Below, in pieces: positions 7,204-59,227 of a stretch of DNA of 64,000 nt (positions are counted from its first letter, which is position 1; each line of letters opens with the position of its first letter). The notes under the pieces are model-generated. The model saw only the letters and a program-made list of their open reading frames with translations, did no database searches and was not told the origin of the DNA. The translations under genes and the position numbers were made by a program. The DNA lies in assembly GCF_026571515.1 (NCBI RefSeq), contig NW_026860755.1, positions 1-64,000 of the forward strand. The letters run 5' to 3'. This DNA is from Ruditapes philippinarum. Its lineage: Eukaryota.

Positions 7204-7482
7204 ACGCATTTTTCTACTTGTGGTCCATATGCCGCTTTTCATGGAATGGCACTAACGTGTCACATTGAAAGTTCCATGATAACCGCCATATGAACACATC
7301 TGTGGATGTTTCGAAATTCTTAATTATACCAGTTTAATGTTAAATGTTGCATTATGCTTAAGCCGGTGCTAGGGGACGTGGACGGTAGTTTGCACTTGAC
7401 AGTACCGTCCATGAACAGGCTCAATCAAACCGAGCCTGCAACATTTTTCAGTTTTGCCGTGTTGGGCTTTCCTTAGGGATTC
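7204..7482 (+). ncRNA. Unassigned structured RNA-like element, subfamily A, copy A1
   Basis: Closing helix aaatgttg(7342)/caacattt, hairpin gtggacggta/taccgtccat with a TTGCACTT loop, hairpin caggctc-AATCAAACC-gagcctg, and 5' stems catatg/catatg, tcatggaa/ttccatga and tggcac/gtgtca. Homologous end to end to 58950-59227 (-). G-U wobbles favour this strand. Confidence 0.7.
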
Positions 7483-7964
7483 ATGCTTCTCTTTATTTTA
7501 GAGGAATTGTTTTCATAATTTTATTTCCACCTCTGAAAATGGTCATTCTAAGCAGACATGAACTAGTTTATGTATTCTGGATAAAGTCAGGATAGGATCA
7601 TGGGACTATTTATCTAACGGATGACGAAGATATTACTTTCAAGGATTATCTCCCTTATATTTAACAAAGAATTTTTTTTAGCAAATGTCTTATTTAGTTT
7701 TGAGAAAAAAAACAACTTTCCGATAATTTTCCATGTTGTAATTCACAAAACTTTTCTTTGCAACGAATAAAATATATTTTTCCAAAACAAAAAAAGAAAC
7801 AAAAAAACCCAACAACAACAATTTTTATATCTGGTGGCCAGCTTAACATTCAGTTTGGAAAATATGTTCACTTTGGAAAAGGACGCGACAATTAAATACA
7901 TGGTTGAAGTCTGAAAAAATTGTTTTAAGGAACAAATCAAACAAACGCCAAGTATGATATCTTG

Positions 7965-8100
7965 GATGTCAACATTTACACTGGGTGAGTGAACTTTCCA
8001 CTCTTCCGATGTGAATACATCATAAACAATCTTATCCACGTTTGGAATGATTCGAACTCGCAACCACCGGCTACCAACCTAAACACCGCTCAACGCTCTT
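7965..8100 (-). mobile_element. Highly degraded tRNA-head SINE (CORE-like)
   Basis: Minus strand has a B-box-like gcgagttcgaatc and a downstream cactcacccagtgtaaatg resembling the segment in the SINE at 26742. Confidence 0.35.
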
Positions 8101-9307
8101 AAAAAAACTAGGTAGAAGAAAACATCCTAGACGAAGTTGTCTTAGTACTTTAGGCTGGTACGCACGTATATGTAATACATACCTTCTGAAAATCTGGGAG
8201 TGAAATCGTGACTCGGCCAAGACACCATGTAACGAATTATTCATATCTTAACACAAAGATGCGATTGGAGCTTGGCTTACAAGCAAATGAACACAAAGCG
8301 TATGTTAGCTGGGTAATTGAATCTAATTTGATGACGTTTGTAGGAATTATATTTTAAATAGATATGAATGGTTGTCGGTTGTTATAATATTTTCCCTATG
8401 CTTTAAATATTGAGTAAAATCTTATTATAAATACTATAAACAGTATCCAGCACACTCGCCAGTTTCTGTTATTATTGAAACTTTAATGACTGTGAAACAT
8501 TTACATAATATGTGGATCCAAAATGATTCATAGTTAAATCGGTTCACGCCATCCTTTTCTTCTGAGCAGAAATATAATAACATATATATTTATTTGGGAA
8601 CACACTTATTACATATTACTTAGTACAGGCATTGATGTTATGATGAAAAATTTAGCTTTATTGTTCATAAAAACATATTTTCATGTCCTTATTGTTTAAG
8701 TTTGAATGGTTAATTTAGCTACACCTTATATAAAATAATTACAAATTTATTCAAAAGGCAGTTCGATGCTGTTTGTTCGCCTCTTTATTCCGAGAACATT
8801 TTACTATTCTTACTTTAGAAGATTATCACTACCGCTATTGGCTAATATCTGCCAGACATCCGCAGCTTGTTATCACCATCCAAGATTAACTCAGTCTCTA
8901 TTAGGCACATAATGGTCAAACCTGCATTCTGTTTAAATGTTTTATCATTTTGAAAACTTGATATTGTGTACCGCATATTTTTGAAAAAATAATCTTCTAT
9001 TTCTTATTTTGATGTTTTGCACTGTAACAATAATAAATTTTCATATAATATACATAATATAATAACATTATGGATATATAATAATAATATTTATATTATA
9101 TGTGTACATCTTCACATATTTCTTTTTATTTTATTAATTATTTTAATTTATTTTATGTTATAAAATCCGCTCCAATCACATTCATTATTTAAATTCAAAT
9201 AGTTTACAAAATCATATTTAAGATTAAATAAAAAAGTAGGGTACACACGATTCCTGAGTAGAGACTTTAATATTAAATTATCGCTTCTATCTCTATGTAC
9301 TTCTCTT

Positions 9308-9537
9308 GGGGCGCCCATGGCCGCTGTGGGTTCGAATCCCGACAGGGACTTTGGATTCTTTCATGTGAGGAAGCTATCAAGCTAATTAACGGAAAGTCGG
9401 TGGTTCTGCTTAGGTGCCCATTCCTGCGTGAAATAATATACGAAAGGGCATCTGAGGTCTTCCTCCACCAGTGAAGCTGGAACGTCGCCATATGACCTAT
9501 ACTGTATTGGAGCGACGTAAAACCCAATCAAGCAAGC
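9308..9537 (+). mobile_element. tRNA-derived SINE with Meta-type central domain; ~40 bp deletion in the tRNA head
   Basis: B box ggttcgaatccc, then gaagctatc.agcta...gtcggtggttct.ct.aggtgccc...gaggtcttcctccacca, and a tail ending aaaccc plus a short microsatellite. Same family as 9808-10087. Confidence 0.8.
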
Positions 9538-9807
9538 GAAATATGCGATTTTAAGAATATCAACTTAATCTTTTCTATATTTCCCTTTCCCCACTTTGAA
9601 ACCTAAAAAGAAAATGAAATCTTCCAGATTGCTCGTGAGTAAAAAATGTTTTGTACTATTTCATAAGAAAACGAAAACATATTAGTAGATTGCAAATTGT
9701 CTTTGATATTTTACTGTATTTTCTCATTGAAAATAATATTATATGTTGGAATAATTTTTATTGACATTGGTCTTACATAGTTTACCAAGTATGCAACTTC
9801 AAAGAAA

Positions 9808-10087
9808 TTTTTTTTTGTTTTGTTTTGGGTTTTTCGTCACATCGACACAGTATAGGTCATATCGCGACGTTCCAGCTTTACTGGTGGAGGAAGACCTCAG
9901 GTGCCCTTCCGTGCATTATTTCAGACACGAACGGGCACCTGAGTAGAACCACCGACGTCCCGTAAGCTAGCTGGATAGCTTCCTTACATGAAAGAATCCA
10001 AAGTCCCTGTCGGGATTCGAACCCTTAGCGGTGAAGGGGCAAGTGGTTTGAAGTCAACGACCTTAACCAATCGGCCACGGACGCCCC
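9808..10087 (-). mobile_element. Full-length tRNA-derived Meta-type SINE
   Basis: Minus strand reads gggcgtccgtggccgattggttaagg (A box) ... gggttcgaatccc (B box), central domain and an A-rich tail. ttcaaag(t)aaatt on both sides is a probable TSD. Confidence 0.85.
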
Positions 10088-10392
10088 TTTCAAAGTAAAT
10101 ATTACGTTGTGTATAACAACATGTCTCATACTAAATGAATTTGATATAGTTGACATTTGTAAAAGATAATTTGCCTGAAGCTGAATGTCAGGTTTTTTAC
10201 TTAATTTTTTTTTTTAAATAATGTGAAATTTGAATTTACAGACACCAATTATAGAAACATCTTTTTGTATTTTGCATGTTACTGTATTGTCGCATTTTTA
10301 AGTTCACAACCTCCTTGATTATGAAACATAAATATAATAAATAATAAATATATAAATAATATATAATAACTTATGCGACTCCTCAATAACAT

Positions 10393-11369
10393 AAAATTCT
10401 GGAAACAAAGTGATCCCTCTGAAGCATTAATCACAACAAAATAACATAAGAATTGCAGACTCGGTTTGATTGAGTCTGTACATGAGGGATAATGGATAAG
10501 TGCAACATCCCTCACACCCCCTAGCACCGGCTTGAGCGGTACTCAATTCTCAACACTTTATAGTGTTGGCATCAATGATCCCGAAGGACCAGAAAATATA
10601 ACAACACTGAAGTGAAGTACGGGGCAACTTTTTACGGCTGCCACACAGCACTTGACACCTGCTGTTGTGAAGTACAAAATTCTGGAAACAAAGTGATCCC
10701 TCGGAAGCATTAATTACAACAAAATAACATAAGAATTGCAGACTCGGTTTGATTGAGTCTGTACATGAGGGATAATGGATAAGTGCAACATCCCTCACGC
10801 CCCCTAGCACCGGCTTGAGCGGTACTCAATTCTCAACACTTTATAGTGTTGGCATCAATGATCCCGAATGACCAGAAAATATAACAACACTGAAGTGAAG
10901 TACGGGGCAACTTTTTACGGCTGCCACACAGCACTTGACACCTGCTGTTGTGAAGTACAAAATTCTGGAAACAAAGTGATCCCTCGGAAGCATTAATCAC
11001 AACAAAATAACATAAGAATTGCAGACTCGGTTTGATTAAGTCTGTACATAAGGGATAATAAAAAAGTGCTGCATCTCTCACGACCCCTAGCATTGGCTTG
11101 AGCGGTACTGAATTCTGAACACTTGAAAGTGCTGGACTCAGATCCCGAAGGACCAGAAAAATATAATAACATTAGAGTGAAGTACGGGCAACAACTTTTT
11201 ACGGCTGCCACACAGCACTTGACACCTGCTGTTGTGAAGTACAAAATTCTGGAAACAAAGTGATCCCTCGGAAGCATTAATCACAACAAAATAACATAAG
11301 AATTGCAGACTCGGTTTGATTGAGTCTGTACATGAGGGATAATGGATAAGAGCAACATCCCTCACGCCC
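10393..11369 (-). ncRNA. Head-to-tail array (3 full units of 283-284 bp plus a partial unit) of the structured RNA-like element, subfamily B
   Basis: Unit boundaries at 10393, 10676, 10959 and 11243. The minus strand of each full unit has a long hairpin (ggcagc/gttgcc), gtcc-TTCG-ggat (cUUCGg; one substitution in the 10676 unit), a caacact/agtgttg-type hairpin, closing helix agaattg/caattct, gtgagggat/atccctcat with a TTGCACTT loop, and cagactc-AATCAAACC-gagtctg. The 10959 unit is a variant. Confidence 0.75.
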
Positions 11370-12342
11370 TTACATCCCTAGTTTCAATCATTTAAGGATT
11401 TATTATTATTTTAGAAAGAACTTTTTCTCAGCATATATAATGACTTTCTAAAGAATGGGTGGTACATATGCGTGACAAAATGCCTCGAGTACTATACTAC
11501 AGCATTTAAGTTTGGCTCGGTGGTAAAGTATTTTGTCATTTTGCCACTTGGACGGAGACTGTGAGTCCGATTCCCATGTGTATGGGATTTGTCGATAGCA
11601 ACTGTCACACATCAAAAATAAGCTTTGACATCTCAGATAAAGAAAACAACAGAGGGTAACATTCTGTTTCATTAAATATTGTGCTATTATAAAACAGTTG
11701 TGATCAAAATGCCAACATATGACATTCAAATTACATTAAACCACGCATAGAAACAATATAACGTCACTCAAAGCTTCTTGTTCTGTCATGTGTATGGATT
11801 TTGCTGTATCAGATGTTGAAACTTGTCATTTTTTGTTCCTTTAGTTGAAATGTTAGAAATTTAAGTTGGTACATGCATGCTTTTTCCAAATTTTCAGCCA
11901 CATATTTCAGATTCAATAATACGTGAGCACGATTTGTTACAAGTCAAACTAGGAGTATTTCAACAAATTTTGCAATGTATTTAAAATTCTTACTGTAATG
12001 AGGCATATTAAGTCTGGTAAAATCTAACGACCATTTTGTGAAGGCTATTTTCTGGTATAAAATATCAAACAACACTAAATTTTCTTATTATTTTGAAACA
12101 TTCTGACAGCATTCCTTAAGTAACACAAGCCCAAATTTGAAGTTAATAATTATAAAAGGATAATGAGCAAAACAAAAAGCGAGAAACAAAACACAAAAAT
12201 AACACAAAAAGCACTATATTTGAATTATTGAATAATCTATTCAATGACTCAAGGTAACTTAAAACGTTGTTTTTGTATATACAATGAAATATTTTACGCA
12301 TTACGTTTAGAATATGAGAAATACGAAATGCATAATATTTGT

Positions 12343-12347
<5 letters not shown>

Positions 12348-12393
<46 letters not shown>
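12348..12393. repeat. (TAA)n microsatellite, about 15 units
   Basis: Read directly from the sequence. Confidence 0.95.
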
Positions 12394-12395
<2 letters not shown>

Positions 12396-12498
12396 TCTTA
12401 AATGAATGCGATTATTTAATAAAGAAAAACCTGTATACCATATATGGTACCTTGAGTTGAAAATTAAAAAGGTATGTCACAAAACAAACACTACTACT

Positions 12499-12535
12499 TT
12501 AGGGTAAGGGTTAGGGTTAGGCTACCCTCACCCTA
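12499..12535. repeat. Short interstitial telomere-like repeat with an inverted part
   Basis: ttaggg taaggg ttaggg ttagg followed by cta ccctca cccta. Confidence 0.55.
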
Positions 12536-13310
12536 CTTTATCATATTTTAATTATAGTCTCATTCTCAGTGACTTATAAAATAAATCTGTTGAAGATGCA
12601 ACAAGAAAGAACTTGAAAAACTACAAATGCTTGCAATCAATGACAGAACAATGTTCTATACTTTTTAGCTTTTAAATCATGCAGATGTTGATTAAACAGC
12701 CATGTAACGTCAGTCAAGATGCCAAATATAGCTTTAAAACAAAGGTACAAGACATACGGTGTGATTGAACTGTCAGTACAGAATGCCCATAGTGTCATGG
12801 TAGAATCTGACTTTGCCAGGTGGTGTTTATAATGTACAGCATACAATGACAGGTAGTTATGTTGTCATTTAAATATGTTCTCATAAAAACACAAAAATGA
12901 CAGTATTATCATTGATGAAAGACACAAACAATGATCATGTCTTCATTTTGGTTAACTACAAAATTCCTTAGACATCTGATCTTTTGCAAACAAACAATTC
13001 GATATACAAATGATATTTAGCTTTCTTTGTAACTGAAGTAATTTCAACTTGTATGGTTTTAGTAGAGGAATGTACGGGCAAAATTACCCAGAATAAAAAA
13101 AACAACATAATTATATATTTATTCTTAAAATGACAGGAAAAATATAAGTGTGATTAATGACGTTAATTAATGAAACTATTTTTCCAAAAAAATTTAGAGT
13201 AAAGACATAATCATACATCCAACCGTTTTAATAACGTGCATATAAATAGCAATGAAGATTATTCAAATTATTGGATGCTTCATTTTCATTGACATCGCAT
13301 AAAATTTTAA

Positions 13311-13470
13311 TCGGAAACAATGAAATACAACAATATAGTATGGACATTACAGACTCGGTTTGATTACATCTGTTCATAACAGATACTGAATAAGTGCAAC
13401 ATCTCTCACGTCCACTAGCGCTCGCTTCGCGTGGTCTAACGGTTCACACTTTCCACGTAGTTAAATCAAA
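13311..13470 (-). ncRNA. Divergent single copy of the structured RNA-like element (B-like)
   Basis: Minus strand: gcgaagcgagcgctagtggacgtgagagatgttgcacttattcagtatctgttatgaacagatgtaatcaaaccgagtctgtaatg. It keeps TTGCACTT and AATCAAACCGAGTCTG. Confidence 0.65.
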
Positions 13471-14373
13471 GTTAGAAGTCCTATCAGTATGACAAAGAAC
13501 CATTTTAATGCAAGATTGATAAATGATAAATTATTTTGCAATTCCAAATATGTTCATGCTATTTTGTGTTTTAAAGTAGAGTTATTACAATAAATGATCA
13601 TGAAATATTAAATATCTTATTTACATTGCTCTAGCGGCTTTCCACTAATGGTGATTTTCATACATACATTCAATACTTCAGAGTTAGATGCGTGTGATGT
13701 TATAGAAAGGAAAATAAAAATTGTAAATGTTTTAAAATCTTTGAAACATGTACATCAGTATTGAATCTCGTATTTTGTATCAGCATAAGATTGGCTTATT
13801 GTTTAAAGCGATTGAATAACCAAAAGTAAATTTACAGCAAGTATTTTGTTGGATTTGTGGGCAGAAACAAGAAGTATCTTGAAAAAAAGATAATCGGCCG
13901 AATTTAACTGGTAAACTTGCATATGTAAGTTCTTAGACCTCCATGCAATCATAAAGAAATGTTAGCAATGATAAAATATTGTCTTGTAAGGTTAATAATC
14001 TTGAAAAATGGAGCACTTTAAGATGTATGTGTATTTAAACGAACCTGTCGTGTTTTGGTAACTCAATTTTTTAACTCATTTTCTCACACCAACCTCTAGG
14101 CAGTCGGTAGGCAATTATTTTTATTACTTGATAACTATGCACAACTATATTTTAAATATAACTGGTAAACAAACTGTCGTTCGGATGTTCTAAGATAAAG
14201 ATATATTAAAGTAACAACATTTTAGTGACATGCATGGAAAATAACATTTAATTATTCCTTTCCAGCACATAAATGAATTGTTGTTAAAACGCATTGAAAG
14301 TTAAGCTATCTTTCGTCAATTTTCGTTGTTGTAACTCACTATATCGGTGAGTTACGAGACCTTTGTTGTCAAG

Positions 14374-19521: not shown

Positions 19522-19990
19522 ACTTTCCTTCAGTGTTGTTATGTTTTCCTTGTCCTTCAGGATCATTGATTTAAGCACTTTTAAGTATTGGAAATTGAGT
19601 ACCACTCAAGCCGGTGTTAAAGGGCGTGTGGATTGTTGCACATTTTCATTATCCTGCAAACTCAAGTCTGCAATTTTCATGTAATTTTGTCGTGATAAAT
19701 GCTTCCGAGGTATTTCACTTTTTTCAAATTTTTTAACTTCACAACAGAAGGTGTCAAGTGCTGTGTGGCAGCTGTAAAATATTGCCCCGTACTTCACTTT
19801 AGTGTTGTTATATTTTTCTGGTCCTTCGGGATCAATGATTCCAGCACTTATAAGTGTTAAAAGCAGGTACCGTTAAAGCCAGGGGCGTGAGGGATGTTGC
19901 ATATTTTCATCATCCCTCATTTACAGACTCAATCAAACCGAGTCTTCACTTTTCACGTAATTTAATTCTTCCGAAAATCACTTATTTTCT
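19522..19990 (+). ncRNA. Two diverged head-to-tail B-type units (19522-19735, 5'-truncated; 19736-~19990)
   Basis: Contains acttcacaacagaaggtgtcaagtgctgtgtggcagc, ggtccttcgggatc, gtgagggat...atccctcat and cagactcaatcaaaccgagtc. The unit junction matches the 10.4-11.4 kb array, in the opposite orientation. Confidence 0.7.
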
Positions 19991-22628: not shown

Positions 22629-23561
22629 TTATATATTCGAATATTTGATGCTGTCTTTTAATGATAGAAAAGGAAACACTTTAAGCATTTCTTGAATTCC
22701 TTCCTTAACTTCAATTTTATGATGGAAACCTAATTTATGTATTTTCTCATAAGACACCTCATAATCCTTTTTGTCATTTTCGGTTTTATCACTTATTGTG
22801 CTAATAGTGCAGTCAGGTAATACCTCTTGTATAATGTGTACAACTTCTAACTTTGTCATATTTAATTGGTCATCTCCAATATTAAATGCTTTACCCGACA
22901 TTACTATTGCATTATCCAAAGCAAATATTATTGCACCCGCAGCATCTCGAACATGCAGGAATGTCCTTCTGAACTGACCTTCTAACAATCGGATATGATT
23001 TTCCATTACAGCTGTAAAAGTTAAATTGTTTATTGAAAGATCAAGTCTCATCCTAGGGGAGAGTCCAAATAACGTTGCGAATCTTAGACATATGCCACCA
23101 ACAGACCGAACTATTTCTTCGCCACGAACTTTACTTTTTCCATACAGAGAAAGAGGTTGTAGTGTTTTTTTCTCAGTACAGACACCTTCCATATACCCAT
23201 AGCAAGATCCTGTACTTGCAAATATCATAATTTGTGTTTTCGTCATGCTATCAACTACGTTTTGTGTTCCCAAAATGTTTGTTGACAATGCAGCATCTGG
23301 GTCTGAATCACATGCAGGATCGCCAACAACTGCAGCGAGATGGATAATTGCGTCTTTACCTAAAACAACTTCAGCAACATGATCTCGGTTTGTCACGTCA
23401 CCCTGTATAATTCTTAGATTAGACATGTAAACAACATGCAGTAATGAGTGTATTCCCCAGTTCAGTTTGTCATATACTGTAACCTCGTGTCCTTCGTCTA
23501 AAAGCATCGGCACCAATACTGAACCAATGTATCCAGCACCTCCTGTGATAAGTACTTTCAT
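22629..23561 (-). CDS. Intronless NAD-dependent epimerase/dehydratase (extended SDR), nucleotide-sugar modifying enzyme; 310 aa from the first ATG
   Basis: Uninterrupted ORF starting MKVLITGGAGYIGS (TGxxGxxG Rossmann motif), with HLAA, ASTGSCYG, catalytic YGKSK (YxxxK), RFATLFGLSPRMRLDL and RTFLHVRD. Confidence 0.92.
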   Translation of the reverse strand: MKVLITGGAGYIGSVLVPMLLDEGHEVTVYDKLNWGIHSLLHVVYMSNLRIIQGDVTNRDHVAEVVLGKDAIIHLAAVVGDPACDSDPDAALSTNILGTQNVVDSMTKTQIMIFASTGSCYGYMEGVCTEKKTLQPLSLYGKSKVRGEEIVRSVGGICLRFATLFGLSPRMRLDLSINNLTFTAVMENHIRLLEGQFRRTFLHVRDAAGAIIFALDNAIVMSGKAFNIGDDQLNMTKLEVVHIIQEVLPDCTISTISDKTENDKKDYEVSYEKIHKLGFHHKIEVKEGIQEMLKVFPFLSLKDSIKYSNI

Positions 23562-24595
23562 GATCAATTTTGATTGTCCAGTTAACTAACTAAACGGTTT
23601 GAGTAAATGTTAAAATTTCTTGGTCTACTTAGATTAATTCATACAATGGTAGTCTTTTTAGTAAATCAAACCTCCACTATGACATGTAATATATAAAAAT
23701 AATGTAGTTGTAGCTAGCTATGCTTCTTGTTAATATTTATCGTTTTTTTTTCAAGTAATGCGATTAGCTTATACAAACATTCTTATATACCCATGTACCA
23801 TAGCCATCTAATCAATAGCAATGTTTTGCTACGGTATATCAAAAATCAGAAGTTCAGTTAGAAATCATTCAAATGCGCTTTATCAATTTAATACATTTAT
23901 TATTTAAGACATGGACAGCTCTTTTTCATTGTTAAAAGACTTAACGAATTCACTTTTACTTCAATTGTTCAAATATATGCGAAATAGTTTGTAGGAAGCT
24001 AATTCAATAAATGAATATTACGAATATTGACAAAACAATAAACTACTTTTCAAAACATAGCACTTTTATGAAATAATTCATATATGCATGTATATAAAGC
24101 ATCAATGTTGTTTCAACCCCATGATATTCTTTAAATTATTTAAAAGACTGTTCATCCACAGCTGAAAGTTAAACTTTCATTAATATGCTTTTTGTCTATT
24201 TTTTTAATAAGGAGTTTATAATTATTTCTATTATCACCGTATTCATCTGTTCATATCACCAAGTTATGTGCATGTAAAAGTAGGTCATTATGATCTACAA
24301 ATTTCAATTAACAGTCATAAAATTCATTTTGCCAACATATATACCTAAAAAGATCTCTAAAGACTAATGATCTTTAAATTCGTCCTTCACTGACAGCTCA
24401 AGTATTTATCCACAGTTAATTACCAAATTTCAGACACTGGAAACAAGCCAATTTCATCGTTAGTTAATTGTTCACGAAAACGTTGTGTATCAGTACAGTT
24501 TAGTAAATAAATAACCGTCACAGGGCCTCAAGTATGCTTAATATGTATAGCTTTATCACTATAGTAATTGTAATTTGATCAGGACAAGAAAAGGC

Positions 24596-30964: not shown

Positions 30965-31002
<38 letters not shown>

Positions 31003-32225: not shown

Positions 32226-32288
32226 CAATCAAACCGAGTCAGCGACATTTTCACTTTTTTCCCGTTTTGAGTTTTCTTAAGAGTATCC
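32226..32288 (+). ncRNA. 3' fragment of the structured RNA-like element
   Basis: caatcaaaccgagtcagcgacattttcacttttttcccgttttgagttttcttaagagtatcc is collinear with the 3' end of copy A1. Confidence 0.5.
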
Positions 32289-34677
32289 TTTTTTGACAAT
32301 TTAAGTCGATGTATTTACATGTGCATATATAATTATTAAAAGGAAAATTATGTAGGGTACTGTAAAAATGCAGAAAGTTTATAAAATTCCTTAACATCTC
32401 GTATGATATATTGTTTTTCGTGTGTTTTGAATTATTTATCTACAGTATATTGAAATTAATATCAATAATGAGTTGTTAAAGGTGATGCCTTAAAATTTTC
32501 CTATCCTTTAAATTTTTTTTTTTCCAAATCTTACCATTTGGCTTTTTATCATTTATTTTATATGTCTTTGTCAGTTTAATGACATCCAATATTAAAGATG
32601 TACTAGGCTCATCTTTGAGTAAAATATTTTTGTTGCTGAAATTAATTGAAATGCATAAAATTCATACTGAATATGTCTAATTTGAATAATAGAACACTCA
32701 AAAAGTGTGGAAGTAACATTCTGTATAACGGGTCAAGTAAAGTTGATCGTTTCTAAAAAAAACAAAACAAAAAACTGCCAGTCTTTTTAACCACACTATG
32801 TATTCATACTGTATTTACCTACAACGTGTAGAGTTCAAAACATAACATATGTAGTCTGTGTGTACTCAAAACATGTTTATTTTACATTTACAAAGAGACT
32901 GTGTAGCTATTATCACTGATTTCAAATATCAAATATAAGCCTAGTTTATCTTTACATTATTGTCCGTGCTTCGACATGGTGTCCACGTCTAGTTTGTTTC
33001 TGGAATGCGTTCATTGATTGTGAAAGAATTATTCAGTTATTTAAACTATTTAAAAATTTCAATCAATTTAAAGGTCTCTCAATCATTTATTTAATTCTTT
33101 TTAAACTTCAATCTACATTTTTCAATATTGTGTAAGAAATGAAACATTGTTATTATAGAATTGCTTTTCAGTGTTTAGATTTATAGTATTGCATGTTTGC
33201 AATATTTTTTTTTTAGTTTCCATCATAAAATAAAGAGCATTTAAGAATGTATGAGTATACGCCCCGGATAATTTTAATTATTTTATTCATTTATTGGTAA
33301 GATCGGTCTATCATTCAGACTTTTTCAGCTTCAATGTGTTAAAAACTTAATTAAAAAAAAATCAAAGTAAATACAAATTTCCCGCCCATATTCATTCTTA
33401 CCATTAAAGTTATAATACCGTTCAACGATGATATTTTACCCTACAACTTAGTTTTCAGAAATTATCACCTAAATCATAAGTATATCCTCATTAATGATGA
33501 ACTGCTATACAATTTTAATCTTATTTCGCCGAAACACTCGGATGCAACTGGATATGATATCGCCAGTTTTTGAAATCCCCGCCATTGTAAAAGCTCTCGG
33601 GCCCGATCGGTTTCATTCGGAATTAACTCATTTGCATACGGAAAAGTTCGGAAATGCTATAATTAGAAACAAGTTCGGAAACGCTATAATTAGAAACGTC
33701 AACAAACTTGCGACCCCGATATTAGGAGATATAATATAAATGAGGGATGCAATTTTATTTTATGTTTTGTAATTAATAAACGATATGAAAAGCTATTTAT
33801 TAGCTAAAGAATGTAGCTTATATCCTCGTAACGCGTTACGAAACAATCGGAAAAAGAACAAAATCTGAGACTGATCTACAGTAAACAAGAAGATGGAGCG
33901 TTGGTCATGTCTATGTCGTACGGTTGCTGTGGTCATTTGAAATCGGTAAATTAGCCGTTCTTTATGATCGCTTCGTACCAGAAATAATACGTACCTATTG
34001 CCAAGCTTCCATCGTAGTAATATGGCATACAGAAGTGTGCGTCATGTAAATACATGGTTGTGTATTATGAAACACAGACACTTGGGCTTTGGTGCTCAAT
34101 CTGTATTATATTATAGATGTTGAAATATGATTTTTTTTTCAAAACGGCTTATATTAAGTTTTTTTTTATATTTTAAAGGCGTTTTGAGCTCCAAACCAAA
34201 GTGTCTGTGTAAGGAAATTATAATGAAAAGAAATATAATTTGGCAATCTGGTGTAATAACCTGTATAAGGTGTTACCAGATTAAATAACCAGTCAACTGC
34301 ATGCAAAAGCCGATACATATTTAACATCTACAGACTCAACCGTTTGATATATGATAATGTATAATTATACTTCAATTTATAAGCAAACAAGAATAGAAAA
34401 AGAACCAAGTTAAAGTTCTGATGCCTATAATTTTGAAAATGATCACTCAAGACCTGATTTTTATGTTAGCCTTTTGTAAAAGTGCACATTTTGGAAAATA
34501 ATGTACTAATGAGAATTTCATTCCAATACAAACACAGTGCAAACTGTGTAAATGTTATTCTGTTAACAATGAACAGTTGCATTCCACTGAAAATAAGATT
34601 GCCAAGAATTAAATCCTAATCTCTGGATTATGTACACTGGTATGGCATAAAACCATAAATTTCACCACTTTATGTTC

Positions 34678-34804
34678 AAATGTTGAATTCTGCTAAAGCT
34701 GGTGCTAGGGGGGCATGGAAGGTAACTTGCACTTTCCAACAGGCTCACCAAATAGAGCCTGCAACAGTTTCAATTTTGTCATTTTGGGCTTTCTGCAGGA
34801 ATTC
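34678..34804 (+). ncRNA. Subfamily A core copy with an internal deletion
   Basis: aaatgttgaattctgctaaagctggtgctaggggggcatggaaggtaacttgcactttcca[deletion]acaggctcaccaaatagagcctgcaacagtttcaattttgtc...ggaattc aligns to 58950-59090 (-). Confidence 0.7.
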
Positions 34805-35888
34805 TTTATTTCTCTATTTTCTGATGTCAAATGTACTTTTTTAAAATTCAAATAAGATCACAGATTGTAACAATGTTTAACAAATAACTTTCAATGTTAA
34901 TTTACACTCCACTTCTCTTAGCACGTTTCAGGACACATTTTTGAATGTTGTTAAAATAACAAAAACACAGATAAATTGAAACATGTATTTGAACATTGGC
35001 AGTAAAACAACAATAAAATATTTTCAAATGAACAGCATATCTTCTTTTTCTTACTCTTAAAATTGTGCAACAGTGACTTCTTTACAGTTATAGTTTTATT
35101 TTTTATTCAATCCATGCTGTCTTAACAGGAAGAGAAAGTGTGAAGATGGCCAATATTGTAGAAGGAAATAATTAATATCTTAATTCCAACCAAATTGTAT
35201 GAACTTGAGCTAACCCCTTTAAGGGTTTCTGGTGATGAAGGATATTATGCTTAAGTAATTGTGACCTTAGACCTTATTAACTCCAAACTAATGCTTAATT
35301 ACTAATCTAAGCAATGTCCCTGGAAATGTTCAAAACCTTGGGACAATGAGTTTACATGTCACTGAGACCTTGAACTTATAATCAAATGGACCAATCTTAA
35401 AACTAATGGCAATCAGAATTTTTCCTGAGTTACATAAACTATACCTTACAATGTTACACATATTTAAAGGTACTTAAACTTTATGTCATCTTGAGCTTTA
35501 AATCTAATTACCTCAAAATCAGTTGGTGCCATTATCTTGGGAAGGGCAATGTTCCTACCAAGCCTAAAAACTTAGGCGTACCCCTGAATGTAAAATATTG
35601 TTTGTTCCCCCCTCCCGCGACCTACCTACAAATAGCACAGCTACCTAAAATATCTTATTGCCCAGGATTTGTTTACTAAAATGAAATCAGAGTGTCAATG
35701 AGAATGACATCTTTTTAACTGTCTCGTGATTTTTTAATTGTAAATATACAAATGTTGGGATATTTGTTGATTGAAACTGAAAATATGGTTCTAAATTTTC
35801 AAGTAAAACAGATGCTTTCATGCATTCACAATTTGTTTGAACTACATATAATTTTAATGAAAAATAAAACAAGACAAACATTTTGAAT

Positions 35889-41804: not shown

Positions 41805-41805
41805 C

Positions 41806-41944: not shown

Positions 41945-43119
41945 ATGTTCAAAAGTTTGCTTGACTTTCTCACGCCATGGAGAGGTAACTCCAGTAAATC
42001 CGTAATGCAAACTCCAAAAAGAAAATTAGATTTTAATGAAACAGAGCAAACCTTGCCGGACATTTGGCACGATGCCTCTACAATTCCACAAACAGCAATG
42101 TCCATGAATAGTACATCTAGCTGTCAAAATGGCTACGACACTAATGTAAACAGTAGGCCTACACGTCATCATTGTGACGTAATAAACCAAAATCAATCGA
42201 TAGATTTTAATGAAGGTATAACGCCACTAAATCTTGGCTATCGCCAATTTGAGAACTTGCCTCGTCGTAGAGAAAGAGAGCCCGATAAATTCAATGGCGA
42301 ATCTGATTTTGGCTTGTTTATTAGCCATTTTGAACAGGTCGCAAATTACAACAGGTGGTCTGAACTTGACAAAGCCCAAAACTTGGCAATTTGCCTCAGA
42401 GGCCGTGCGCAATGTGTTTTGGAAGAATTGTCTCAAACAGAGTTGAGCCATTATTCTTGTCTGAGAGAAGCTCTCAATAAACGTTTCAACCCAAGTGAAA
42501 GAACCTCGAGTTATAAGTTTGGAATTTAGAAATAAGAGGCGAAATAAGCAAGAATCCCCTGCTGAATATGGTTATATAATTTAAAGCGTCTCGGTATAAA
42601 AGCTTACCCCCGGACAGGCCGCACAAAACATTAGAAACCTTAATTGTAGATCAATTTATAGAGGGATTAAATAGGTCAAAACTCAGACGCCACGTGCAAT
42701 TCGGGCACCCTTCTTCATTAGATAGTGCCATTTCTCTTGCAACAGAATTTGAGGCATTTGACTCATTTACGACTTGTAAGCCTAGTAATGAAGAATATAT
42801 CCGTCCCGTACAAAATCAAGATGTAAATACGCAAACATCGCTAGAGAAACTTGTCTCTTCTCTAAATGATAAAATTGATTTACTTTCAGTTAATAAAATA
42901 TCAGGTAATAATAAAAGACAGGGCAATAGATCCGCTCGCCGTCAAAGAGTATGTTATAATTGTCACGAAGAGGGTCACATTAGTACCTACTGTCCGTTAA
43001 AACAGAATAGATCAGTATACAATCAAGATAATTACAACCTTGGCAATGCGCCAGCGCAGTCTACATGTACGCTTCCTAATGAAGTTAAAAATACCACAAA
43101 TCAAAATTCGTTAAACTAG
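41945..43119 (+). pseudogene. gag: Gypsy gag, frameshifted
   Basis: EPDKFNG...HFEQVANYNRWSELDKAQNLAICLRGRA capsid-like region and the CCHC knuckle CYNCHEEGHISTYC. Frame broken at ~42520-42690. Confidence 0.88.
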
Positions 43120-46100
43120 AACGGGCTGAGTTTGAGGCCGAAAGCCCAGTCCTTTTGCAAAATTTTAATTGTGATTCAAACATAAGGCCTTCTGTTAATG
43201 TTAGAGCTATTTCACAAGGTTGTTGGTTTCTACCCTGTGTTATTGATGGTAGTGAAAAGGATTTATTAATTAATTCTGGTGCGTCTTGTAGTATTTTGAC
43301 TTATGACTGTTATAAATCCTTGGCTAGTTTGCCAACGCTTAATAAAATAAATGTTGTGCTTAAAGGCGCTGACGGTAGTCCATTGAATATTTTCGGACAA
43401 TGTAAACTCAAGCTTAAAATTAACGGTCGTATGTTTGAACACAATTTGGTTGTTGCCCAGTTAGATAAAAATGGTGGTTTATTGGGCCAGGACTTTCTAG
43501 AAAAATTTGATGTTACTACTAGTTGGGGCAAGGGTATTCTTAAAATAAGAAATTTTAAAGTGCAGTTGAAAAGAGAAAATACAAATGTATGCACTCGCGT
43601 TTCAGTTTCGGAAACAATCAGCATTCCTGCAAAATGTGAATTGTTATTAAAGGGTAAATTACTTGATTCATGGGAAAATGGTACTTTTGGTATCGTAGAA
43701 CCTAATGATAAAATTTTGCAGCGTAAAGATCTATTTGTAGCCAGGTCTCTTGTAGAAAGCCACAACAAAGAAGTTGTATTCTCTATTTTAAATTTAAATT
43801 CAGAGCCTGTAAAGCTGAAACAAGGTTATGAAATAGCACATTTATCTCAAATGTCGTCGGCACAAGTAGTTTCACACGGTACAAATTTCAACGTTTCTAT
43901 GGAAAATGATGTACTTCCGGAGCATTTAATGCCCATGTATGAAAAGTCTTGCGAAAATCTTTCGAAATCACAATCTGAACGATTGCGAAATTTTCTGATA
44001 AATTACCAAAATATTTTTGTAGGGCCTGATGGGAAACTTGGTTGTACTGATGTAGTAAAACATACCATAGACACCGGTGATAACCGTCCAATTAAGCTTC
44101 CTCCAAGACGTTTGCCTATTGCGCAACGTGAAGTTGCCGATAAAGAAATAAATGACATGTTAGAAAATGGTATAATTTCAGAAAGCAATTCTGCTTTTGC
44201 TAGTCCTATTGTCTTAGTACGAAAGAAAGATAATTCAGTTAGATTCTGTGTAGATTATAGAAAGTTGAATGATATTACGCGTAAAGATGCCTATCCTTTG
44301 CCTAATATTTCTGATTCCCTTGACCAATTGGCGGGTTCTTCATGGTTTAGTACTCTTGACCTAGCTAGTGGATTTTGGCAAGTTGCCATGGATACTGATG
44401 ATAAACATAAAACTGCATTTGCGACGCACAGAGGCTTGTTTCATTTTAATTTTATGCCATTTGGGCTAGCAAACAGTCCAGCCACATCCGAACGTCTAAT
44501 GGAACTTGTACTAAGTGGCCTGAGATTCGAACGCTGTCTGGTATATTTGGACGACATAATTGTATATGGCGACACATTTGAAAAAGCATTAGAAAACTTA
44601 ACGCTTGTCTGCGAGAGATTAAAGTGTGCAAATTTAAAATTGAAACCAAAGAAATGTGTATTATTTCAGAGAGAGGTCGCTTATCTAGGCCATGTAGTAT
44701 CTGGGGATGGGGTGGCTTGTGATCCAGCTAAAATAGATGCTGTTAAAAATTGGCCAAAGCCGATGTCTGTTTCTGATGTTAAAAGTTTTCTTGGACTTGC
44801 AAATTATAACGAGAAATATGTAGAAAATTTTAGCACAATTGCATATCCCCTTACACAACTTACGCATAAGAATAGCCGTTTTCATTGGTCCGAGGCATGT
44901 GACAATTCATTTACAACATTGAAGTCAAAGTTAATTGAGGCGCCAATTTTAGCGTATCCTACAACAGCAGGACGCTTTATTCTGGATACAGATTGTTCTA
45001 ATTTCTGTATGGGTGCCATCTTATCACAAGTTCAAAATGGGGAGGAAAGGGTAATTGCGTACGGAAGTTCATAGTTCACTTAAATGGTTAAAGAATTTCA
45101 AAGAGCCCGAGGGTATGGTTGCGCGCTGGCTAGCTATTTTAGACACATATGATTTTGAAATTGAGCACAGAAAAGGAAGTTTGCACTGGAATGCCGATTC
45201 CTTTAGTAGAATTACACACTCAAAATGCAAGCGCGAAAATTGTACGGACTGTTACCCGATTAAAGAGAATAATATTTCTGTTGTTACTAGGAACCAAGCA
45301 AAGAAAAGTACATTATCAACTGAAATTGATACAAGTGCGAAATTCGAACCCGTGACTTCTGATATAAATTCTAAATCAAAATCAGGTAAAGGGCACGAAA
45401 AAGCAAATAAAGACAATCAAACTGAAATTAGTTTTATTTCACCAGAAAAATTTGTAAGAACATGGATTGACACTTGGTCAAATGATCAGCTTAGAGATTT
45501 CCAATTAAAAGACCCTACATTATGTCCCTTGATACATGCAATGCAATCGGACAAGGAAAAGCCATCCTTACCATCTATTTCGAAATATAGCCACGGTACT
45601 AAAGTTTTATTCAATATATGGCATGAATTGACCCTGGTAAATGAGGTTTTATATAAAATTTCTGATAAGGATATCGGAGGTAAAGTCAATCTTTTGGTTA
45701 TCCCTAGCAATATCCGCAGATATATTTTTGACCAATTACATAGTAATAGAGTTGCAGGACACTTTGGTAGAGACAAGACTGTGAACGCCATTAAATCAAG
45801 GTTTTACTGGCCTGGTCTTACTATAGGTGATGTCTCTAGGTGGTGCAATGAATGTGATCTATGTTCTAGGCGAAAACCTGGCCCAGGTCGAGGAAAGGCC
45901 CCAATGAAAAATGTGCAATCCGGTTTCCCATTGGAACGTATTGCCATAGATATTCTTGGCCCTTTACCAACTTCTGACCGTGGTCATTCTTATATAATGG
46001 TTGTAGGAGACTATTTCACAAAATGGACAGAATCTTATGCTATTGCAGATCACACAGCACAAACTGTTGCAGATACTTTAGTGACCGAGTTTATATGTCG

Positions 46101-47032
46101 TTATGGTGTCCCATATTGTATACATACAGATTAAGGTCGATAATTTGAATCAAATTTGTTCAAAGCCTTATGCAAATTATTAGATATAGACAAGACCCGC
46201 ACTACCCCCTACCATCCTCAGTCTGATGGAATGATTGAGCGTTTTAATCGTACATTGCAACAAATGTTGGCAATGTTTGCCAATTCAAACCGAAATGACT
46301 GGGATAACCATCTTCCTTATGTTATGTTTGCATATAGAACTAAAGTGCAAGATAGCACAAAATGTACACCATCTTTATTAATGTTTGGTAGACACCATCT
46401 TTATTAATGTTTGGTAGAGAAATAAATGTACCAATTGATATTTTGGTCGGAGATCCAAATCATAATGATATGTGTCCTATAGAATATGTACAGTGGGTTC
46501 AAACCGCTAGTGAGCAGGCTTTTTCGAATTTGCACAACAAAACTTGACTGGCTCTTTCAAGAGACAAAAGTATTATCATGACCAAAATATGAAAACTTAA
46601 AGTATTGAGGTAAACTCATGGGTATGGAGATGGTATCCGCCTAATGCAAATGTCAAATTAGGTTTAGGCTGGACTGGACCATATTTGGTTATAGGTAAAC
46701 CAAGTGATGTGACAGTAAAAATACAAAAGGCTCTGGATGCCCCAATGATTACTGTACATGTTAATCACCTTAAACCATACCTTGGAGATACTTCCAGACT
46801 TACATCTTGGATACAACAAGATGACCCAAATAGGGAATTGGTAACCATACCAAGTCAAATTGTGTTATCAAATTTAGATTACGATGTAACCGAAAGTCCA
46901 CCCAGATTCAATGAAAATTATGAAGATCTAACAGATAACTCCTTAAAAGTTATGACAGATCATCAAAACATTAAATTTACCAAAACTGGACGTGTGACAA
47001 AACCACCAATACGTTTATTGGAAGAAATCTAA
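43110..47032 (+). pseudogene. pol: Gypsy pol (PR-RT-RH-IN), defective
   Basis: Protease LINSGA (catalytic D replaced by N), RT with RFCVDYRKLN and YLDD, RNase H ILDTDCS with a deletion after RVIAYGS, integrase HHCC zinc finger, IAIDILGP and DGMIERFN. Stops and frameshifts from 46132 onward. Confidence 0.95.
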
Positions 47033-47843: not shown

Positions 47844-47848
47844 AAAAA

Positions 47849-49244
47849 AACTAGAAGTGTGTCATCATGCAACGGATGCCCCCGCATGCAGCCAAAATTT
47901 CAGATGTTATAATATTTAGTTCCAAATTTGTTTGCACAAATAATTTTTTTCATTTTTAGTTCAAAGCCCTTAAAACTTTTCAATGTTAACACAAACCATT
48001 TCCATACAATGTTCAAGGCACTGAAATTATTCAGTCTTAACCTTTTGAAAATAGCATATTTCATATTTGTAGCCAAAATAGTGGCTACATACATTTCCAC
48101 AAAAGTATGGGTTCTGAAACTGAAAGTTCAAAATTTTTCCAACATTCAAGAAAGATAAGTTTGTCCAAAATCATTGAACCATGACCAAATTCAAACTTAA
48201 ACTGCTTATTCCTAAGATGTATCTATATTATTTTCAAATTGAAAGGGACATAACTCTGCAAAAAAAATCATCGAACCATGACCAAATTCCAACTTGACCT
48301 GCCCATTCCATATCCATATGTCAAGTTTGAGTTAAATATGTAACACTGTTGGGTAGATATGAACAGAAACTGTTAATTTCATATTATTTTCAAAGTCTGC
48401 CAAAAATAATTGAACCATGACCAAATTCAAACTTGGCCTGGGCATTCCAAAAACATATCCATATGTCAAATTTGAGTTGAATGTGTTGTACCGGTGGGGA
48501 AATAATACACAGAAACTGAAAATTTCATATCATTTTCAAAGTGAAAGGGGCATAACTCTGCCAAAAGTCATTGAACCATGACCAAATTTGAACTTGACCT
48601 GCGCATTCCTTTGACATATCCATATGTCAAGTTTGAGTTGAATGTGTTGTACCGTTGGGGAGATAAAGAACGGAAACTGAAAATTTCATATTATTTTCAA
48701 ATTGAAAGGGGCATAACTCTGCCAAAAATCATCTAACCATAACCAAGTTCTTACTTGACCTGTATTTTCTCATGACATATCCATATGTCAAGTTTGAGTT
48801 GAATGTGTTATACTGTTGGGGAGATAATGAACGGAAACTGAAAATTTCATATTATTTTCAAAGTATAAGGGGCATAACTCTGCCAAAAATCATCCAACCA
48901 TAACCAAATTCTAACTTGACCTGTATTTTATTATGACATATCCATATGTCAAGTTTGGGTTTAATGTGTTGTACCGTTGGGGAGATAATGAACGGAAACT
49001 GAAAATTTCATATTATTTTAAAGTAAAAGGGGCATAACTCTGCCAAAAATCATTGAACCATGACCAAATTCAAACTTGACCTGTATTTTTTCATGACATA
49101 TCCATATATCAAATTTGAGTTGAATGTGTGCAACCGTTACTAAGATAATGAATGGAAACTGATGATGACGGAATGACAGAATGACGGAAGGACGGAACAG
49201 GGTAACACTATATGCCCTGGCCATTACATGGCGGGGGCATAAAA
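47849..49244 (+). mobile_element. Complete HINE/pearl-like non-autonomous element
   Basis: Head aactagaagtgtgtc, ~155-160 bp tandem monomers (ggggcataactctgccaaaaatcat...ccatatgtcaagtttgagttg), a gacggaat-type microsatellite, and a 3' hairpin atgccc...gggcat followed by an A run. Confidence 0.8.
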
Positions 49245-53791: not shown

Positions 53792-53985
53792 CTGTCAATC
53801 AGATAACAACTTCACGGTCGCTGTTGGTTTTAATTACCCTTTTTAGAACTTTTCATCGCTTTCAATCACTACCGGAGTATATCCTTGATTGAATTAAATC
53901 ACAGTTTCTTTCCACTTTTCGCTTTTTCCTTTTCAAATCTCAAAATTTGTTTCTCTTAACGTGACACACCTTTCGTATTGTCCGC
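53792..53985 (-). other. Putative exon 1 (3' part) of the minus-strand transcript, interrupted by the MULE-like element
   Basis: Donor cag|gtgag at 53792. With the insertion removed, the exon starts at a YY1-like aaataatggcgg. Confidence 0.4.
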
Positions 53986-55611: not shown

Positions 55612-55765
55612 ATTGTCCGCCATTATTTTGGTTTGGTAAATCATATCACGTGACTCAGATCCGAACATTTACGGAAATAATCGAAGGGCTTCCCGACAAA
55701 ATATAAATCTTATTTGACTAACCCTGTCAAATAAGAAAATGCATTTTTCATTTACGTCACGTAAG
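55612..55765 (-). promoter_or_regulatory. Putative housekeeping-type promoter motifs
   Basis: Cluster of a YY1-like ccgccattatt, E-box tcacgtgac, ETS-like cggaaat and CRE-like ttacgtca. Confidence 0.4.
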
Positions 55766-57284: not shown

Positions 57285-57581
57285 ACCGTTGGCCTAGTGG
57301 TGAAGACGTCCGCCTTCGGATCAACAGGTCGAAAGTTCGAGCCTCACATGGAGCGTTAATTTAAGGATGAATTTTTCACGTGGGACTCGTTCCGAAATTG
57401 CGCTACGTGAGCAACGTGGTAGTTAAAATGAATAGTTACCGATTTTTATCCAACTGGCGCCTGGCATAGTGATAAGAGTTGGGAGGTTAATGTTATGCAA
57501 GCAAACGGTGTCTCATAAGTCAGAAATTGCTGGCCCTTTCAGTAGGAATGACACCATATTAAACAAGGCCTTTACTTTTTA
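57285..57581 (+). mobile_element. Degenerate tRNA-derived SINE
   Basis: A box tggcctagtgg, B box agttcgagcc and a tttacttttt tail. Confidence 0.6.
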
Positions 57582-57754
57582 CAGTGGCTGCATATTGTTT
57601 TGACATATTTAAGTAAACGCATAATATATAAATAATTACATAATTTTGCAATTTTCTTTACATGTCGTTTTTAAGCTGTCCATTGTTAGCATTGTCCATT
57701 GTTGATGAGAAAAGCATTGCATCCACACATATATTTCCATGCTTAATCTAAGGC

Positions 57755-57825
57755 CCTACTCCGCCATTAAAGCTTGAAAGTCGCCATATGTCCTTAACAG
57801 TGTCGGTGCGACATAAAACCAATGA
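57755..57825 (+). mobile_element. 3' fragment of a Meta-type SINE
   Basis: aaagcttgaaagtcgccatatgtccttaacagtgtcggtgcgacataaaacc matches the tail of the SINEs at 9308 and 9808. Confidence 0.65.
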
Positions 57826-57854
57826 AGTGTAAACCAATTTTATTCTTTCAAGTA

Positions 57855-58650
57855 ATGGCGACCTAAACGGATCACTTCTCTGTCGTCTGTCTGTCTATCT
57901 GTCCGTCCGTCAGAAAACTTCTTGTCCAGACTACTCCACAAAAACTTCTAGTGTAGTTTCAGTCAAACATTTCATCAAGTCTAGCTGTGCATATCATCTG
58001 CATTTTCCGGTTCAACGATTTTTGTCAGAGAAATGGCCCTTCAATGGTTTTTATTTTTAAAATTTATCCAGACTACTATTATATACTAAAGCAATTTCAA
58101 TGAAATTTTACAGGATTGATCTGTAGCTCAAGTTTTTGCGCATGTTACACGTGTTTTCCGATTGAATCATTAGGGTTGAGCTATGGATGGCCCTTGAATA
58201 ACACGGTGTTGTTAGCATCTCTTATGCCACTAATACTATTTCAGTGAAACTTTAAGGATTGATTGGTGGCTGAAGTACTTGTGATATTAGACATCTTTTC
58301 TGCTTGAATGATTTTTGGCCAAGATATGGCCCTTGAATAAGAAAAGTTTTGCATATCATCAGCATTTATTTTGTTCATGAGTTTTTGTTGAGTAATGGCC
58401 CTTTAATAATTTTTATTTTTGAATATTTTCCGAAATACTACGCTCATACCACTAATGCAATTTTAATAAAACTTTATAGGATTGATAAATAGCTTAAGTA
58501 CTTGCACATATGACACTGGTATTCCAGTTTAATGATGTTTAGCTAAGTTATGGCCCTTATATGTAAATTGCGTATTGCCTTGTTAATGAGTTGTGTGTCT
58601 CCTGCTACACAATAGCTGCAACATGCATTGGCTATAATGAGGCGACACAT
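57855..58650 (-). repeat. Old HINE/pearl-like element with degenerate tandem monomers
   Basis: (tctg/tccg)n microsatellite followed by repeated atggccctt...tgaaacttta.aggattgat blocks. Confidence 0.55.
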
Positions 58651-58949
58651 ATGATTGTTAATAATAATCAATCAGGATAAATCTGCTACAATGGAATTAC
58701 ATGTATTTGAAATAATGATTTTAATAAAGTTTAATTCTTTTATTTAGAAAATATACGGTGATCATACATAAAGAAAATGAATCCAATGTAGACATACAAA
58801 CCTGATACAAGCGTTCAGAAATGTCGTTTCTCTACAGTCACTGGCATTAGTGAATGATTTATCTAACACATTTAAGATAAAACATAGTAAATAACAATGT
58901 GCAGTTAAAACATTCACAATGGTCAAACGTTTTAAGATAGATAAATACA

Positions 58950-59227
58950 GAATCCCTAAAGAAAGTCCAATACGACAAAACTGTAAATGTTGCAGGCTCG
59001 GTTTGATTGAGCCTGTTCATGGACGGTAATGGAAAGTGCAAGTTACCGTCCACGCCCCCTAGCACCGGCTTAAGCAGAATTCAACATTTAAACATGAAAT
59101 AGTAAAATTTCGAATTTAGAAACATCGGCAGATGTGTTCATACGGCGGTTATCATGGAACCTTCAATGTGACACTTCCGTGCCATTCCATGAAAAGCGGC
59201 GTATGGTCCCCAAGTAATAAAAAGCGT
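58950..59227 (-). ncRNA. Unassigned structured RNA-like element, subfamily A, copy A2
   Basis: End-to-end homologue of 7204-7482 with differences concentrated in loops and linkers. Has a compensatory catacg/cgtatg stem and a GGAA tetraloop on tggcac/gtgtca. Confidence 0.72.

Follow-up and report, generated by a model that had tools for sequence, protein, structure and literature searches.

The window analyzed here is a 64,000-nucleotide stretch of Ruditapes philippinarum DNA (NCBI RefSeq contig NW_026860755.1, positions 1 to 64,000; contig C9242 of the 1.4-Gb assembly in our numbering), with the base composition of AT-rich eukaryotic DNA. It contains a dispersed family of non-coding repeats that share a core of ~100-120 nt predicted to fold into a structured RNA. 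A first-pass annotation, made from the letters alone, had proposed about 12 full or partial copies at 8 loci on both strands. We searched the window, with filters off, using a covariance model seeded from eight core copies. This search, together with BLAST, recovered 10 solid and 2 weak copies at the proposed places, and all ten solid matches had E<=1e-12. The resulting density is about one core per 6 kb. A 16-nt motif shared by the copies occurs 7 times in the window at <=3 mismatches, compared with a chance expectation of 0.01. The copies belong to two main families, A (629-bp unit) and B (283-bp unit), in both of which the core forms the 3' domain, and to an older core subfamily, C. BLAST comparison with the full units showed that all 8 window copies reach the unit 3' end and begin at an internal unit position. 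The copies and their cores are listed below, with scores in bits from the covariance model.

7075..7500, plus strand: A-family copy covering 207-629 of the 629-bp unit, truncated on its 5' side, 3' end complete; 91.8% identity to the A unit by BLAST
7331-7452, plus strand: core of this A copy, 123.7 bits
10394..11369, minus strand: B-family concatemer of 3.45 units of 283 bp, starting at unit position 157 and ending at the unit 3' end (10394)
10442-10562, 10725-10845, 11008-11128, and partial 11292-11369, minus strand: cores of the B array, 137-139, 111, and 77 bits
13311..13455 (core 13336-13455), minus strand: old, 5'-truncated copy of the third core subfamily, C, 92.6 bits
18736..18833, minus strand: very degraded possible copy, unreliable, 12.2 bits, E 0.56
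19522..19990, plus strand: old B-like concatemer of ~1.8 units (unit 58-272 followed by 3-237 plus the tail), 77-83% identity to B
19579-19684 (with a deletion) and 19848-19960, plus strand: cores of the B-like concatemer, found with the covariance model
32226..32281, plus strand: heavily 5'-truncated A-type fragment, unit 553-606; BLAST 80% identity, E 3.5e-8
34656..34820 (core 34667-34775), plus strand: older A-like copy, unit 452-628, its long hairpin carrying a deletion; BLAST 80.4%, 57.3 bits
58933..59227, minus strand: A-family copy, unit 336-629, 5'-truncated, 3' end complete; BLAST 92.5% identity
58979-59100, minus strand: core of this A copy, 125.6 bits

Tandem Repeats Finder (TRF) reports the B array at 10393-11369, with a period of 283 bp and 3.4 copies, and its four pieces are 98.6, 98.6, 90.2, and 98.4% identical to the B consensus by BLAST. 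The covariance-model match for the partial fourth core spans 11292-11403 on the minus strand. The C copy sits within a larger multi-copy repeat, both of its flanks being common to 8 other loci. The fragment at 32226..32281 holds just the last hairpin strand and part of the tail, and the covariance-model match there (32144-32256, plus strand) is weak (E 0.23).

Two side observations concern these copies. One unit of the B array (10960-11242, minus strand) is only 90% identical to the consensus, while its neighbors are at 98.6%; by eye, several of its core differences are G-to-A or C-to-T on the sense strand, and the unit may have been heterogeneous already at insertion or may have been edited. 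In addition, contigs C10293, C12323, and C3715 carry further instances of both the 7075 A copy and the 13311 C copy, with common flanks and similar spacing (window ~7000-13500 versus loci L002-L004, L063, L064, and L069), which looks like segmental duplication or uncollapsed haplotigs.

Families, unit ends, and junctions

Both units are non-coding. B is a young family whose copies are 98-100% identical to the B consensus; A copies are 85-100% identical to a reference A unit taken from one array, L014. Further older lineages comprise C, D, and B-like copies. Many A copies lie in arrays of period 629, and the extra sequence of the A unit is homologous to the non-core part of B. In the genome, an A query returned at least 4,829 first-look candidates, 40 of which were scored at full length and were 90-97% identical, and the core model returned ~250,000 first-look candidates (a rough figure). 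The best 150 core-model matches are B copies with scores of 134-140 bits, which are practically identical to the B consensus and often lie exactly 283 bp apart. We put the genome-wide copy number at ~10^5, again roughly, which fits the core density of the window.

Alignment of 30 A loci revealed a single sharp 3' boundary (...CTATTTTA) and differing 5' boundaries. Likewise, at 30 B loci each array ends at one unit position (...CCAGAATTT(T)), with starts at positions 14 to 258. Across all loci, 168 of 236 pieces reach the unit 3' end, and 5' starts occur throughout the unit, with clusters at positions 60-72, 148-157, and 203-214 of B and ~260-267 of A. Only ~1/40 arrays begin exactly at unit position 1, so the template acts like one that lacks a 5' end. 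The arrays contain 0.1 to 5 units, head to tail and with exact 283-bp or 629-bp spacing, at many independent loci. In the 30-locus alignments, the flanks of the copies are unrelated, and no conserved upstream or flanking module was found.

Strings of mixed families are frequent, and their joins always fall at a 3' end. Besides A and B, these strings involve a third non-coding family, X, which has its own fixed 3' end (...CATATTTT) and forms short tandems of about 110-125 bp. Terminal pieces of X, 27-40 bp in length, are sandwiched between A and B copies at junctions. Family X lies at the following positions.

L053, 2300-2830
L040, 1169-1319
L036, 2106-2144 and 2718-2756
L048, 2620-2775
Window, 928-948 (weak)

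The string at L037 reads A274-629, A1-627, B203-282, B1-282, and A162-628, with more A and B pieces upstream, for a total of seven pieces. The entire string occupies one point of another element, for which the uninterrupted sequence in L048 provides an exact empty site, and comparison of the two shows neither duplication nor loss. Nested insertions of B into A in L043 and L050 also have no target site duplication (TSD). Five head-to-head inverted pairs were found (in L034, L044 [twice], L040, and L043); the two copies of each pair are 0-45 bp apart, and their 3' ends face outward.

The core fold and its conservation

RNAalifold models the core as a four-way junction consisting of a closing helix, a small hairpin, a long hairpin, and a last hairpin. 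The small hairpin spans an invariant AAGCCGGUGCUAGGGG stretch, the long hairpin has 11 bp and the loop UUGCACUU, and the last hairpin, with 7 bp and the loop AAUCAAACC, stacks directly on the closing helix. The core is located about 55-65 nt upstream of the unit 3' end and is predicted to be enclosed by a long-range helix, which whole-unit folding forms between unit positions ~82-126 and the tail. Hand comparison identified three compensated pairs between A and B in this helix, where local hairpins are a possible alternative.

Covariation was evaluated in an alignment of 39 distinct copies, drawn from the window and from 17 further loci. Stem cells paired in 89.9% of cases, compared to 36-45% when the 3' partners were slid by 1-3 columns, and 21 pairs had double changes, compared to 8-13 in the slid controls. 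Among 500 shuffles, none reached the observed values on four of five measures and one did so on the fifth. Between A and B, compensating changes affect 4-5 pairs in the long hairpin and 3 in the closing helix, and the AAUCAAACC-loop hairpin contributes 1 more. Additional pair types occur in lineages C and D (L071, for example, shows G.U to G-C and G-C to A-U), and a B sublineage (L042:2474) carries a compensated pair of its own. While the helices vary, the junction and loop nucleotides GCUAGGGG, AAGC, CAG...CUGC, and a G-N-A linker are invariant. All of the compensatory stem changes that the first-pass annotation had quoted, between A and B and within A, are present in the sequences, and the covariation that it had described was retained in this larger alignment.

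Several core pairs are G.U in nearly all copies. The predicted folding energy of the B unit is -105 kcal/mol for the sense strand versus -77 for the antisense strand, and that of the A unit is -180 versus -163 kcal/mol. The conserved G.U pairs and the energies place the fold on the strand with the fixed 3' end, the same strand that had been called originally. The covariation, the slid-partner controls, and the strand asymmetry together uphold the proposal that selection has acted on an RNA fold of one strand, as opposed to neutral repeat decay. In contrast, a proposed GGUGC/GCACU pseudoknot did not hold up: its partners are nearly invariant, family C changes the 5' partner without compensation, and a local hairpin (AGC/GCU plus CUC/GGG) explains the stretch at least equally well.

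Selection on the fold does not extend to the inserted copies. Within A and within B, 36% and 39% of one-sided stem changes, respectively, keep a pair, which is about the neutral expectation from transitions alone and indicates neutral decay after insertion. Between lineages, by contrast, the differences are compensated, and the fold is kept only in the source lineages. The neutral decay of insertions, combined with compensated differences between lineages, implies that the fold is needed in the propagating RNA and not at insertion sites.

Rfam searches, at gathering thresholds and at E<=10, returned nothing relevant on the window, the B array, the A copy or unit, the isolated core, or the A-long and X loci. 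The only matches were SNORD20 and PK-repBA (chance level) and an unrelated tRNA in L053. The units had no Rfam match to tRNA, 5S, or 7SL RNA, and ARAGORN reported 0 tRNA genes. By eye, the units have no RNA polymerase III (Pol III) A or B boxes, and they contain internal T4 runs. A full-text literature search for the invariant core motifs yielded no relevant match. These results agree with the earlier statement that the family matches no known snRNA, snoRNA, or ribozyme, although it may already be named in Dfam or Repbase. Two candidate layouts around the unit junction, hepatitis delta virus (HDV)-like and hairpin ribozyme, were compared by hand and rejected; the complementary strands that they need are missing, and Rfam is silent.

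Propagation of the copies

Judged from the sequences, the fixed 3' end, ragged 5' ends, concatemers, chimeras, inverted pairs, and TSD-less nesting bear the hallmarks of target-primed reverse transcription in the style of Penelope-like elements. Because of these fixed and ragged ends, concatemers, and chimeras, the core is better described as the conserved 3' domain of a very abundant mobile element than as the multi-copy RNA gene family or undescribed "system" that it was first taken for. We consider it probable (roughly 70%) that the copies are short, non-coding, non-autonomous retroelements of the Penelope-like style, with the core serving as the recognition signal of a reverse transcriptase supplied in trans. 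The first-pass annotation was correct that terminal inverted repeats, TSD, a poly(A) tail, an open reading frame (ORF), and a tRNA head are all absent, yet this list fits Penelope-style retroelements.

The insertion patterns show copying of RNA of one strand into DNA, starting from its fixed 3' end, a short U-run. Copying stops at variable points, leaving ragged 5' ends. Upon reaching the start of a unit, it runs on into another unit or into the 3' end of another A, B, or X RNA, and this run-on copying generates head-to-tail concatemers and chimeras. The core would be the element recognized by the trans-supplied reverse transcriptase, and such recognition would account for helices that vary only with compensation and for junction and loop nucleotides that stay constant. 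The fold is thus most likely a handle gripped by reverse transcriptase and not a free-standing RNA gene, and the architecture of the insertions points to a Penelope-like element, a kind of element plentiful in this genome, as the most likely supplier of the enzyme.

With respect to possible enzymes, the genome contains at least 139 GIY-YIG matches. It also contains an abundant ORF family (12,215 library clusters at E<=0.001) in which reverse transcriptase-like motifs are visible by eye; the nearest ESM Atlas clusters carry HTH_animal and RVT_1, and Pfam detected no domain in the ORF or its long homologues. Members of this family are as follows.

L048, 2234-2900 (same as L047, 2517-3014)
L044, 2506-2787, minus strand
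L037, 595-915, minus strand
L052, 2764-3120

X is inserted in one of these ORF copies, A162-629 follows another at the same codon, and the composite A/B string of L037 sits in a third, at a different site. We considered whether the 3' end of X could be the C terminus of the ORF and rejected this: L048 shows that X is merely inserted there, and it thus gives no evidence for X as a partner.

Several points weigh against a Penelope-like retroelement with a recognized core. The link to Penelope-like elements is drawn solely from the architecture of the insertions, and the (TA)n target preference reported for Naiads is not seen; the insertions show no bias toward microsatellite targets, including (TA)n or (CA)n. 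Family X behaves in the same way yet does not have the A/B core, so the core is not a universal requirement of the enzyme at work. The TSD signal is marginal: for 63 insertions with unique flanks, the mean best flank match was 3.06, compared to 2.64 +/- 0.24 in the shuffled-pair control. The few flank matches of 6-10 nt include the T-rich end of the element and read as microhomology at priming or joining. Finally, the 39-copy alignment was fitted to the model and is therefore biased toward structure, and the number of independent lineages behind its covariation is small, in essence A, B, C, and D.

A fixed 3' end without poly(A), 5' truncation, junction microhomology, and a conserved structured 3' region are also known from stringent pairs of long and short interspersed elements (LINEs and SINEs) of the UnaL2/UnaSINE1 type. 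The copies could accordingly be SINE-like parasites of a stringent LINE (RTE, CR1, or L2 type), with the core as a LINE-derived 3' stem-loop and tandems arising by occasional template jumping. We regard this as unlikely. The units lack a tRNA, 5S, or 7SL head and Pol III boxes, their internal T4 runs would stop Pol III, and no LINE with an A/B tail was seen in the 290 kb examined. Moreover, systematic concatemers and head-to-head pairs with outward 3' ends are atypical for LINE-mobilized SINEs but have been described for Penelope. The internal T4 runs and the lack of A/B boxes also led us to drop a Pol III reading in which the U-run is a terminator. A retrozyme-like origin, in which the core contains a self-cleaving ribozyme (permuted and twister-like) that trims array transcripts to single units, the units are ligated into circular RNAs, and rolling-circle reverse transcription produces concatemers, would account for a template that seems endless, given that only ~1/40 arrays begin at position 1. 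The unit size and tandem layout match those of metazoan retrozymes, at 170-400 nt (PMC7229834), and variable helices combined with strictly invariant junction and loop nucleotides resemble catalytic cores. Most elements of the twister ribozyme, defined here by stems P1, P2, and P4, pseudoknots T1 and T2, and conserved L1/L4 nucleotides (PMC5408937), can be fitted to the core by hand (closed P1, adjacent N^A, CUCAAGC loop, and G-run 5' of P1). However, this mapping works only if the strands are newly permuted and P2 has just 3 bp, families A, C, and D do not preserve the putative P4, and the candidate pseudoknot partners never vary, so that covariation is silent on them. At E<=10, neither the B array nor the A unit nor the isolated core matched an Rfam ribozyme of any class, type I hammerheads being absent from the A-long arrays as well; no CUGAnGA hammerhead box was found by eye in either strand of the B unit. 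A genome search with Twister-P5 (RF02684) gave no match among 80 scored candidates, the putative cleavage site (unit positions 195-197) shows no accumulation of 5' ends, and chimeras joined at 3' ends need template switching in any case. We rate this origin as improbable. It is a similarly long shot that the core is a new or permuted self-cleaving twister-like ribozyme, which would turn array transcripts into circular RNAs of unit length and make the family a hammerhead-free "retrozyme" partner of Naiad-type elements, or, in a related alternative, a three- or four-way junction resembling telomerase RNA, by which a TERT-related Penelope reverse transcriptase is recruited to copy a 283-nt template again and again.

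Two further explanations carry little weight. In having short dispersed arrays, T-rich insertion points, and hairpins but no TSD, the copies resemble bivalve HINEs (PMC7492417), as would suit satellite-like repeats that a rolling-circle DNA transposon (Helitron or Helentron/HINE) has spread, a situation described for oysters. Here, however, the arrays are the whole insert, with unique DNA directly at the ragged 5' edge; inner copies are complete, only the first is cut, and it is cut on its 5' side. The G.U strand asymmetry, moreover, points to RNA. The ragged 5' ends already largely refute this explanation, which we consider very improbable. Given the strong conserved fold and the U-run at the 3' end, the copies might instead represent snRNA- or snoRNA-like small RNA genes that are functional and accompanied by many pseudogenes. 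Against this stand the absence of an Rfam match, the ~10^5 copies, most of them truncated and nested in each other and in other transposons, the unrelated flanks, which leave no conserved upstream promoter, and the neutral decay of the copies, and we judge it the least probable of the explanations considered.

Dispersed satellite-like arrays in bivalves are usually attributed to rolling-circle DNA transposons, whereas the ~10^5 copies (roughly) described here bear marks of reverse transcription. The way in which Penelope-like enzymes pick a template and copy it repeatedly is still to be worked out, and Craig et al. have asked for an in vitro system (PMC8557442). A covarying domain near the initiation site of a recently active element (B, 98-100%) offers a concrete, mutable candidate for the recognition signal, and the B element would be a clean natural substrate for template-choice assays. 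For annotation, the core motif is absent from Rfam and would otherwise be repeatedly flagged as a novel RNA gene.

Neighboring features and related systems

The window and one of the other loci contain additional features, as follows.

22629-23567, minus strand: continuous 312-aa ORF, a member of the NAD-dependent epimerase/dehydratase family (E 9e-39), apparently without introns in animal DNA
29272-29910: tandem array, period 145 bp, 4.4 copies; no similarity to A/B noticed
36523-36974: tandem array, period 162 bp, 2.8 copies; no similarity to A/B noticed
38668-39014 and 48396-49162: two related tandem arrays of 161-177 bp units, separate from the A/B system
39839-39871 and 49165-49197: 8-bp microsatellite, (ATGACGGA)x4, ~0.8 kb downstream of the 38668-39014 array and directly after the 48396-49162 array, respectively
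41945-46134, plus strand: ORFs of a Gypsy-type long terminal repeat (LTR) retrotransposon (protease, RVT_1, RNase H, integrase)
L053, 314-398: tRNA-like sequence (51.5 bits to Rfam tRNA) carrying 15 inserted nt at the anticodon

The layout with the microsatellite directly after the array resembles bivalve pearl/HINE (Helentron) elements. The tRNA-like sequence may be an intron-bearing tRNA gene or a SINE head.

In stringent LINE/SINE pairs and in R2, a structured 3' RNA is recognized by the reverse transcriptase, and initiation is exact at the 3' end without poly(A); the R2 enzyme is also known for end-to-end template jumping. The A/B domain differs from these 3' stem-loops in being larger (a four-way junction plus a long-range helix) and in that concatemers are the rule. 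To our knowledge, Penelope-like elements have not been reported to carry a covarying domain with a four-way junction upstream of their 3' end. By hand mapping, the core resembles twister (RF02684, RF03154, and RF03160) in its closed long helix followed by N-A, its CUCAAGC hairpin loop, and a pairable G-run. Unlike twister, it has no covariance-model match, its 3-bp P2 has a bulge, its strand order lies outside the three known permutations, and the putative P4 is not conserved.

With Cg_HINE/pearl-type Helentron elements, the A/B copies share short, satellite-like dispersed arrays, the absence of TSD, and T-rich targets. Oyster HINEs, however, are bounded by defined flanks and possess subterminal inverted repeats as well as a 3' palindrome (PMC7492417), whereas A/B copies have no left or right flank modules, subterminal inverted repeats, or microsatellite and instead show ragged 5' edges and an RNA-like, strand-specific structure. 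Metazoan non-LTR retrozymes, which are present in mussels, are 170-400 nt long and combine a type I hammerhead with circular RNA (Cervera and de la Pena 2020, PMC7229834). Like A/B, they are non-coding, AT-rich tandem units a few hundred bp in length with highly self-paired RNA and are thought to be mobilized by Penelope-like enzymes; unlike these hammerhead-defined elements, A/B units contain no hammerhead or other Rfam ribozyme.

Penelope-like elements are known for 5' truncation, partial tandems, and adjacent inverted 5'-truncated copies (Craig et al. 2021, PMC8557442). In the same survey, non-autonomous Chlamys elements such as MRC1 form head-to-tail insertions of multiple copies, and the hammerhead-free Naiads dominate bivalve genomes (PMC8557442). 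The A/B elements depart from Penelope-like elements in having no (TA)n or (CA)n target bias and a 3' end that is not tied here to a coding Penelope element. In their 5' truncation, tandems, inverted copies, lack of a canonical hammerhead, and very high copy number in a bivalve, they resemble non-autonomous Penelope-like elements of the Naiad/Chlamys clade.

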